Below, piece after piece: positions 9,333 to 12,300 of a DNA stretch of 64,000 nt (positions are counted from its first letter, which is position 1; every line of letters starts with the position of its first letter). Location of the stretch: contig NW_026262701.1 of NCBI RefSeq assembly GCF_021869535.1, positions 37,386,001 to 37,450,000 of the forward strand, read 5' to 3'. The translations under genes and the position numbers were made by a program. This DNA comes from Mytilus californianus. Taxonomy: Eukaryota. The notes under the pieces are model-generated. The model was not told where the DNA came from. It ran no database searches and was given only the letters and a program-made list of their open reading frames with translations.

Positions 9333-12300
9333 ATGGCTAAAAAGGATACACCAAGGTCAATGTTGCAAGCATTCATTGAAAATGTTCCAACTACAGCTCC
9401 AGTAAAGAGAACAAGAGCTAGAACAAGATCTCCAGAAGACAGGCATTTCAATGAAACTGTTCCTAATCAGAAAAAGAGAAGAAGATCATCTCTAGCAGTA
9501 AAACAAACACCAAGATCAATGGTAAAGTGTCTATTAACCCTAGCATCAAGTAGATTTCAACAAAACTATAATGCCTTATTTTCATAAAAATTGTTGATAC
9601 AAAAAAGGCTTAAATAAGCTTTGTTTTTTTTAACATTCCTCCTATGGTTAGCTTAATTAGCAGTTTTAAGGTTCCTAATCATAGATGTCATTTTTGAGTG
9701 TTCTCCTTTAGTGCAATAACTGCCTCCTGCATGTGCATTTATATGATTAACTAAAACAGCTTCTTAAACAATATTTATTAATTTTTGCCAGTGGCAGAAA
9801 TTCCTGATCAAGGGGACCCTAGCTAAAGTGACAATTTAAGCTGTATTCTAATATATTCATCAATAACTGCTGCATATTTTGCTGATGAAACATATATATG
9901 CAGGAATAATAAATAAACTACATATAAAATTGACAAATTTTCCTGAAAAATAAATTCATAACATTGAAGGGTACAAGCAAACAGATGTGAAAGCAGAATT
10001 TTTTGTTGTGATATAAATTTCTTTTTGTGGATGCACAAAATTTAAACCCCAAAAAATAAAAAAAAACAAAGAATATTACTATATTTACTTTTTACTTAAT
10101 CCCCATAAAGTGAATTTAGAGACTAAAGCACAAAAACTAATGTTCCTTCAGTTGTCAGAGGTACAACTACATAAGTTTCTGGATCTAAAAGTATGAACTT
10201 GCATGTTTGTCTCTCTATGTGCATAACTATTCTCTGAGTTGATTTAGAGTTAATCAGTATGTGAATCTTTTATTTTTCAGATTGAATCTTATATGCATGA
10301 TCACAAAACACAGACTCCGTTTGTTCGTGTGTTACGTAGACGGTCGAAAACTTTTACTCCAATTACAGAGTCAGGTGATAGAAGTGATGTAATTACACCA
10401 AGAACAGCATTGGAAGGATTTATTAATAATGGTAATCTGTAAAAAGGGATTAAAACATAACGCTTTATGTTAAAAGGGATTAAAACATAACGCTTTATCC
10501 AGGGAATACTTGTCAGATTTCTTTTTTTATTGAAATAGTCCAAATGGTCAAAAGATGCTTTTGTTTTGAATCTTTAAGGGGTCAATGTAGAAATAAGAAG
10601 ATGTGGTATGATTGCCAATGAGACAACTCTCCACCAGAGACCAAATAAAAATTATATTTATTTAGTGTACTGCTTTTTGGAAAATTACAGAAAAAACTAC
10701 TTAGTATTTTAGACAGAAATCAAAGGGAGATAAGTATTTTAGACTATCCAAATCAAAGGAAAATAAGTATTTTAGACAACAGAAATCAAAGGGAGATAAA
10801 TGTGTTCTATGAACATCAATTAAAACCAAGTGTGAACACAATCATTCATGGTATGTGATTTTAACAATGACATCGCAGGCAAACCAAAGAGAACAATGTT
10901 GCTTGGGGGTCAGATGGATAAAAATCAATTTAAAAGTTCTGTGGCTAGTTACTATTAAATTTTTGGGAAATGATATATTTAACTTGTGACCTTGTGAAGA
11001 AGTATGATGAACTAACATCAGACATAACCATCACAGTATATAAATAGAAAAATTTGACAGACAGAATCATTTTGTAGATCCTGCTCTGTAGCTATGAATC
11101 AATCATAGGAACTTGAGTAAATTTTGTTGATCCAATCATGTATTACAGCTTTAACTAAAATCAAACTACTGTGTATTTTTGTGAATTTCGTGGGAATAAG
11201 AGAATCATGCTGTCAATTGTTCAACAAAGTATAAATTGTCTATAGCTAGGCTTGTAATAAAGACTGTAATGAAATATCCACGAAAATACAATTTTTCCTC
11301 AATCCACAAAAATTGGACACATGAAAATAAATGATTCAACAATACTCAAAAACTATCAAAAAAATTACTAGCTTAAATTTTGTTCTCATAATTGTGAATG
11401 AAAATAACATTGTAATATAACTGATGTTAAATGATGAAATGTTGCCTTAAGTGGTATATGTACATATTTTGTTTTAGCACCAGAAGAGACACCAGTCCAG
11501 AGGGCAGTAAATGAGAGTGAGCTGGATAGTGAATCAGATATCATCTTGCCTAATGAAACCCTTCATGTGACTCATTCACCAATGTAAGTAGCAGAGGGAA
11601 ATATTGTATTATAGCATTTATGTACTACTATTATTAATTGTTGCACCAGTAAGAAAATTGATATCTTTAGGATTTTGAAAGTATGAGTCAAATATTCTTT
11701 TTTTTCAATTTCAGACATAATGAAGACACTGGGTCAATTACAACTTCACAGAAACAAAGGCAAAACCAACATCATATCACATTACAGCAGTTTACACAAG
11801 GGATGCATAACCTGACCTCAGCTGGTGAGATCATGTGACCTAGTCATGTAATTAATGTAAAATCGTTATCATATGATCATTGAAATGGACTTTACTTTAC
11901 ACATGGAATTTTGTCAACCAAAAAATGATGGAAAAATGTTTGAGGCATACTCAGGGTTTTTGTTTTGCAAAAAAAAAACAATGAAAAAAAGAGGCCATTT
12001 TTATCTCTCCTGCAAGAAGGCGACATTGCAATCTTACAGTCTTGGATTAAAGTTTTTTGTGAAACCAATAACATTTTTCAGCAATCATTGAATTTTAGGA
12101 ACTTTTACAGAAGCCTTCTCATAACCATCTGGTGTAAAAAAAAATCAATATTTTACAAATAAATGGACTTGATTCATTTTTTCTTCTGTCCAACTTTAGG
12201 TACAGTCTGTGGTTAAAGATTTTACACTTGAATAACCTTGTCAAACCTTTATGCAAATTTACAAAACTTGAACAGAAGCATTTTCATAATCAAGAGATAG

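Follow-up and report, generated by a model that had tools for sequence, protein, structure and literature searches.

How many Ndc80 complexes can a single CENP-T molecule bind directly? The answer matters because the number of Ndc80 complexes per CENP-T sets the strength with which a kinetochore grips microtubules, and the published counts are one direct site in chicken, one in yeast, and two in human (PMC9252888). The question is raised anew by a gene that begins at position 9333 of a 64,000-nucleotide stretch of the Mytilus californianus genome (RefSeq assembly GCF_021869535.1, contig NW_026262701.1, positions 37,386,001 to 37,450,000), hereafter called the window. The first 120 residues of its product, P0008, contain three Thr-Pro-Arg (TPR)-helix motifs, at T6, T59, and T102 (M1, M2, and M3). 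Against the two direct sites of the human protein, the mussel protein thus has three motifs, which are sites predicted from sequence. The literature searched, whose coverage was incomplete, yielded no CENP-T described as having three TPR motifs. We lean modestly toward the explanation that this is a CENP-T with three direct Ndc80 receptors, a layout that would be ancestral in eumetazoans, with a site lost or degraded in chordates and some ambulacrarians.

The gene and its three motifs

In RefSeq, P0008 is labelled "serine/arginine repetitive matrix protein 2-like isoform X2". Judged by its sequence, this label is misleading and the gene, as the original prediction had called it, is CENP-T, an inner-kinetochore protein. 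Pfam places a CENP-T_C histone fold (PF15511) at residues 943-1038 with an E value of 4.1e-25 and 88.4 bits against a cut-off of 28.1, and named orthologues are found in many phyla. Searches with the C-terminal region matched CENP-T of M. galloprovincialis, Lingula, and fish, together with a cnp20-like protein of Haliotis, and the M. galloprovincialis orthologue already carries the name "centromere protein T". Searches with the N-terminal profile matched named CENP-T proteins of starfish, sea urchin, Ciona, Nematostella, Ptychodera, and Priapulus. A splice-aware reconstruction of the 13-exon model gave GT-AG at every intron (Table 1). A word search that used the large exon downstream as its query recovered a 970-amino-acid relative, P0003, whose N-terminus was the query of the second search by which the Mytilus proteins were retrieved. 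Pfam scans of the N-terminal exons and of the whole of P0008 recovered no N-terminal family, and CENP-T_N was not matched; this family matched only P0020, a Logan protein that looks vertebrate by sequence.

A TPR motif has been defined as a T-P of the type phosphorylated by cyclin-dependent kinases (CDKs) with arginine at +2 (PMC8844409), and each mussel motif begins in this way (T6-P-R, T59-P-R, and T102-P-R). All three fit the pattern T-P-R-x-h-h-x-x-h-h, where h is hydrophobic, with a proline at +17 (P23, P76, and P119). The cores are TPRSMLQAFI in M1, TPRSMIESYM in M2, and TPRTALEGFI in M3, which place M, L, F, I; M, I, Y, M; and A, L, F, I, respectively, at +4, +5, +8, and +9. A second T-P follows 16 residues past T59 (T75) and past T102 (T118). 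The original prediction had listed three motif strings in a gene starting at the same ATG, and all three are present at the positions that it gave. Two of them are interrupted by introns: M2 (QTPRSM then IESYMHDHK) straddles the junction of exons 1 and 2, where intron 1 splits it after TPRSM and 9521 is joined to 10281, and M3 (ITPRTALEGFINN then APEE, with the T102 codon at 10395) straddles the junction of exons 2 and 3, where intron 2 splits it after FINN and 10431 is joined to 11478.

The pattern TPR-x-h-h-x-x-h-h has three matches in P0008. Among 20,000 shuffles of the protein, one match occurred in 73 and two or more in 0, and in the six-frame translation of the 64-kb window, which contains no N, the pattern occurs at these three sites only. 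A fourth TPR, at residue 728 (TPRSQIRSQ), was rejected as a candidate, as it has no hydrophobic face and its 4.2 bits lie within the shuffle range.

Transcript support comes from Logan contigs of RNA-seq runs, from an RNA study of a "mollusc metagenome". One contig (X5 record 15) joins 9378-9520, 10280-10430, 11477-11580, 11715-11824, and 13112-13204, and another (X1 record 1) joins exons 2, 3, and 4. Since these contigs connect exons 1 to 5 as predicted, all three motifs are in one mRNA, and the presence of the motifs in transcripts, on which the original prediction depended, is borne out by spliced RNA covering exons 1-5. The contigs diverge from the window by a few percent (8 of 143 letters in the exon 1 stretch), and these differences probably mean that their source is another allele or a related Mytilus. 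Two further proteins, P0003 and P0025, from Logan contigs of 4.7 and 2.5 kb, each carry the three motifs in one open frame. Neither exon 2 (151 nt), nor exon 3 (106 nt), nor both together (257 nt) can be skipped in frame, so no simple isoform drops M2 or M3. About 6% of the raw RNA run X21, from the genome's own study, was sampled and gave 0 reads on the exons, a result that is uninformative on expression.

Table 1. Coordinates of the CENP-T gene, its motifs, and its other features in the window
Feature	Position	Strand	Remarks
CENP-T coding region	9333..30995	+	13 exons; spliced translation equals RefSeq P0008 (1046 aa), residue for residue
Exons 1 to 5	9333-9521, 10281-10431, 11478-11583, 11715-11824, 13108-13204	+	
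Exons 6 to 9	13824-13930, 15065-15121, 16668-18446, 23939-23988	+	
Exons 10 to 13	25388-25512, 28082-28225, 29526-29630, 30875-30995	+	
M1, DTPRSMLQAFIENVPT	T6 codon at 9348	+	Wholly within exon 1; read from sequence
M1, residues D5-P23, DTPRSMLQAFIENVPTTAP	9345..9401	+	CDK-type T6-P7, Arg8; predicted helix 7-17
M2, first half, Q58-M63, QTPRSM	9504..9521	+	End of exon 1; T59 codon at 9507
M2, second half, I64-P76, IESYMHDHKTQTP	10281..10319	+	Start of exon 2; predicted helix 60-70; second T-P at T75
M3, first part, I101-N113 and first base of A114	10392..10431	+	End of exon 2; predicted helix 103-113
M3, tail, A114-P119, APEETP	11478..11494	+	Start of exon 3; second T-P at T118
HITLxQFxQG motif, HITLQQFTQGM	11715-11824	+	Exon 4, one per exon; read from sequence
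HITLxQFxQG motif, HITLEQFSQGL	13824-13930	+	Exon 6, one per exon; read from sequence
Large exon 8, 1779 nt	16668-18446	+	Many D/N-L-T-P-S-R-R (LTPSRR-type) repeats, CDK-type sites
Histone fold, exons 11-13	28082..30995	+	Pfam CENP-T_C; separate exon pieces also match

Likeness to validated receptors and a proposed mechanism

The human protein provides the closest experimental reference, an orthologue that shares the CENP-T_C domain and whose motifs, TPRTLLRRVL and TPRTLLKNIL, share the core T-P-R-[TS]-h-h-x-x-h-h. Once phosphorylated by CDK1, human T11 or T85 each suffices for the binding of one SPC24:SPC25, and the two sites together bind two NDC80 complexes; the human values from isothermal titration calorimetry are 4 and 45 uM (PMC5241120). 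A profile made from eight lophotrochozoan CENP-T N-termini (A1) and run against the sequence set of the PDB matched full-length human CENP-T with an E value of 0.003, aligning M2 with STPRTLLRRVLDTADPRTP, the human T11 motif, and M3 with QTPRTLLKNILLTAPES, the human T85 motif. A second T-P follows human T11 at +16 (T27), as it does in M2 and M3, and the 16-residue spacing of T59/T75 and T102/T118 is that of human T11/T27 and also of chicken T72/S88. In the structure of chicken CENP-T residues 63-93 on Spc24-Spc25 (PDB 3VZA), one TPR-helix is present with its second phospho-site at +16, and the chicken peptide occupies the same Spc24-Spc25 groove as Dsn1 (PMC11189301).

AlphaFold2, run on residues 1-135 with an alignment of 28 species, predicted three helices, each directly after the threonine of a TPR (ranges in Table 1) and with peaks of 84-88 in the predicted local distance difference test score (about 85 for the M2 helix); the rest of this region is unstructured in the model. 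By sequence and predicted structure, M1, M2, and M3 all have the traits of the validated human sites, and the region they occupy is homologous to that of T11/T85; taken singly, M3 and M1 also score clearly in a motif model built from non-molluscan species, where M2 is marginal. A one-to-one orthology of M2 with human T11 was not accepted from the profile alignment, as M1 and M2 are inseparable as classes between phyla.

These features suggest how the mussel protein would work. The C-terminal histone fold would anchor CENP-T in centromeric chromatin, and the disordered N-terminus would display the 18-residue unit T-P-R-x-h-h-x-x-h-h-x7-P three times. CDK1 would phosphorylate T6, T59, and T102 in mitosis, and each amphipathic helix, once phospho-primed, would dock into a single Spc24-Spc25 dimer at its RWD head. 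The direct capacity of one CENP-T would then be as many as three Ndc80 complexes, with any that arrive via the Mis12 complex (Mis12C) in addition. With 53 and 43 residues, the linkers give length enough for the three sites to be occupied simultaneously, and a three-fold direct Ndc80 valency of the mussel CENP-T is plausible. The role of phosphorylation differs in yeast Cnn1, where it inhibits binding and does not promote it. Budding yeast Cnn1 also has an N-terminal helical Spc24-Spc25-binding motif, in one copy (PMC9252888), which is likened to the mussel motifs by its description and not by sequence.

Distribution of the three-motif layout in animals

An exhaustive HMMER search with the N-terminal profile returned 50 proteins, to which taxa were assigned from cluster names. 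Three motifs at similar positions were found in 21 species of five phyla, with M1 at residues 4-12, M2 at 45-83, and M3 at 95-144, and in the 21 aligned species M1 sits at the extreme N-terminus. The three motifs occur in the same order in all bivalves with a complete N-terminus (Mytilus, Tegillarca, scallops, Mya, Sinanodonta, Pinctada, and Dreissena), in the gastropods Haliotis, Gigantopelta, Batillaria, and Babylonia (where M1 reads TPQ), in the chiton Liolophura, in Lingula, in the nemertean Lineus, in the starfish Acanthaster and Asterias, and in the coral Acropora. Most of the gastropods examined have all three, and heterobranch snails have a degraded M1. The invertebrate proteins with this layout differ from the mussel protein in which copy lies closest to the consensus, which varies by lineage. 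The M2 class is kept in molluscs, Lingula, Lineus, starfish, and Acropora; Holothuria (TPG) and Nematostella (TTR) retain the M2 helix and have lost its CDK site. Two motifs are found in crinoids, Lytechinus, two hemichordates, Ciona, and Priapulus, and a single TPR in the vertebrate-looking P0020.

Conservation within the region follows the motifs. They are identical in four Mytilus species, where the linker between M2 and M3 is variable, and across 28 species the mean conservation is 0.54-0.63 in motif columns vs 0.31 elsewhere. P119 of M3 is conserved in at least 90% of the 28 species, and the ETP tail of this motif is nearly invariant across phyla. The original prediction had presented the triple as a property of a bivalve CENP-T. 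Motifs 2 and 3 are indeed conserved in every other bivalve with a complete N-terminus, but the bivalve framing proved too narrow, as gastropods, a chiton, a brachiopod, a nemertean, starfish, and a coral also have three motifs. The layout is therefore better described, as far as these sequences go, as a widespread invertebrate state than as a bivalve novelty.

The between-phyla score of M3 is 21.6 vs 9-12 for other class pairs, which makes M3 a clear orthologous class by sequence from cnidarians to vertebrates. With three motifs in cnidarians, ambulacrarians, and lophotrochozoans, an old three-site state is the simplest reading, and the three-site state is probably ancestral and was reduced in chordates. 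Takenoshita et al. did not clearly see the extreme N-terminal TPR beyond primates (and Chinese hamster) and suggested that it was acquired in primates (PMC8844409). Among marine invertebrates, cnidarians included, both a TPR-helix at the extreme N-terminus and a third copy in the middle are widespread, and these data argue that the extreme N-terminal motif is ancient, which reverses the direction of change proposed in that work. In a bolder and tentative form, which we think rather unlikely to be right in every part, three direct sites would be ancestral in eumetazoans and kept in molluscs, brachiopods, nemerteans, starfish, and corals; chordates would have reduced them, and the primate N-terminal TPR would have been retained or restored and not gained; and the three mussel sites, added to two Mis12C-type motifs, would allow up to five Ndc80 complexes per CENP-T. 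Natural three-motif CENP-Ts are in any case material for studying the effect of valency on attachment.

Fish have an N-terminal helix without T-P. Residues 1-30 of the CENP-T of Clarias and Polypterus (P0016/P0017) contain an M1-like helix of this kind, with ARVLLRNVL (in full ARVLLRNVLQT) in Clarias and TMRVLLGEI (TMRVLLGEIINN) in Polypterus. The N-terminal site may survive here as a copy that has decayed or that needs no phosphorylation.

How many of the motifs act as receptors

Several observations weigh against three direct receptors inherited from a eumetazoan ancestor. Between phyla, M1 and M2 cannot be distinguished as sequence classes but only by position, so the shared ancestry of the triple rests on position and order, and the three-motif state could conceivably have come from independent duplications. 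Nearby CDK sites of human CENP-T, T27 and S47, do not bind SPC24:SPC25 (PMC5241120). On the partner side, SPC25 is present in the M. californianus genome (40.7 bits) with its RWD domain split over two exons, and a Pfam six-frame search of the genome for SPC24 gave sub-threshold matches only. The doubtful copy among the motifs is M2. Under a motif model built from non-molluscan species only, with 500 whole-protein shuffles as the control, Mytilus M3 scores 17-18 bits and M1 9-10 bits (9.2 given for M1), while M2 reaches 5.8-6.3 bits vs 5.4-5.6 for the best of the shuffles and is marginal. It is the most diverged of the Mytilus copies, with Tyr and Met at +8 and +9 and His at +12, and so has Tyr/Met/His where validated sites have Leu/Ile/Ala.

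It could thus be that only two motifs act as Ndc80 receptors, most likely M3 and M1, so that direct valency would equal the human two, and that M2 is a paralogue that has weakened or taken on another role, for instance binding with low affinity, serving as a regulatory CDK site, or docking a different partner. Besides its score, which barely exceeds the shuffles and falls below those of the other two, M2 in lophotrochozoans has a signature of its own, with His at +12 and T at +14. Its CDK site has been lost in the two species named above, and the motif is absent in crinoids, sea urchin, hemichordates, and Ciona; a second partner also has a precedent in fission yeast, where a CENP-T N-terminal motif is reported to be shared with Ccp1 (PMC8640933). 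Nevertheless, M2 retains T-P-R, the h-h-x-x-h-h face, and P at +17, is predicted to be helical, is identical in the four Mytilus species, and is placed by the profile on the validated human T11 motif. In Haliotis, moreover, M2 is the strong copy (17.5 bits in the same motif model) and M1 is weak, so the weakness differs by lineage and does not characterise the class as a whole. We treat a two-receptor mussel CENP-T as a serious possibility, albeit one we consider doubtful. Returning to the three-receptor reading, the chances that all three motifs are working receptors appear about even, and the chances that at least two are appear high.

A more radical departure would be that the invertebrate TPR-helices serve other roles, for instance in nuclear import or in docking a CDK or a phosphatase, and that their likeness to the vertebrate sites is superficial. 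The failure of Pfam CENP-T_N to match the mussel N-terminus fits such an account, which is nevertheless quite improbable given that the profile match on human CENP-T covers exactly both validated sites, that M3 is one orthologous class from cnidarians to vertebrates, and that the mussel genome encodes SPC25; with the same motif at the same position in the same orthologue, an altered function is unlikely. There is a negligible likelihood that the motifs arose by chance or that a wrong gene model produced them, both accounts being refuted by the shuffles, the exact RefSeq match, the spliced RNA contigs, and the conservation in more than 20 species.

Other features of the locus and of related records

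The mussel CENP-T is about twice as long as the human protein and differs from it in having the LTPSRR repeat exon and two Mis12C-like motifs. The latter, the HITLxQFxQG pair, also occur in P0003 and Tegillarca. The pair may represent a doubled Mis12C-binding site, which would raise the total Ndc80 valency; a PDB search with residues 140-262, the HITLxQF region, gave no match. The hemichordate Ptychodera has a similar pair, RMSVGTFGRGV and RMSLGTFSRGV. The LTPSRR-type repeats of exon 8 are conserved in P0001-P0004.

Among the related records, the M. trossulus entry for the same gene is named "mucin-17-like" in RefSeq, the M. coruscus model (1428 aa) appears to be a fusion with an upstream gene and has an internal duplication, and the Solemya model seemingly has its true first exon absent. 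In P0040, a repetitive ENA metagenome protein of 1237 aa, nine stretches match the N-terminal profile (E = 1.2e-8), with no match to the TPR-helix pattern.

Intron 2 contains two repeated elements. Directly past the donor site of exon 2, positions 10441-10499 hold a tandem duplication of about 29 nt (AAAAGGGATTAAAACATAACGCTTTAT, twice). Farther on, 10588-10646 is a very abundant short repeat, with a summed DNA contig depth of more than 2.7 million in run X18 and a high depth in RNA runs; it has many different flanks. A translated stretch related to this repeat recurs near 26300-26500.

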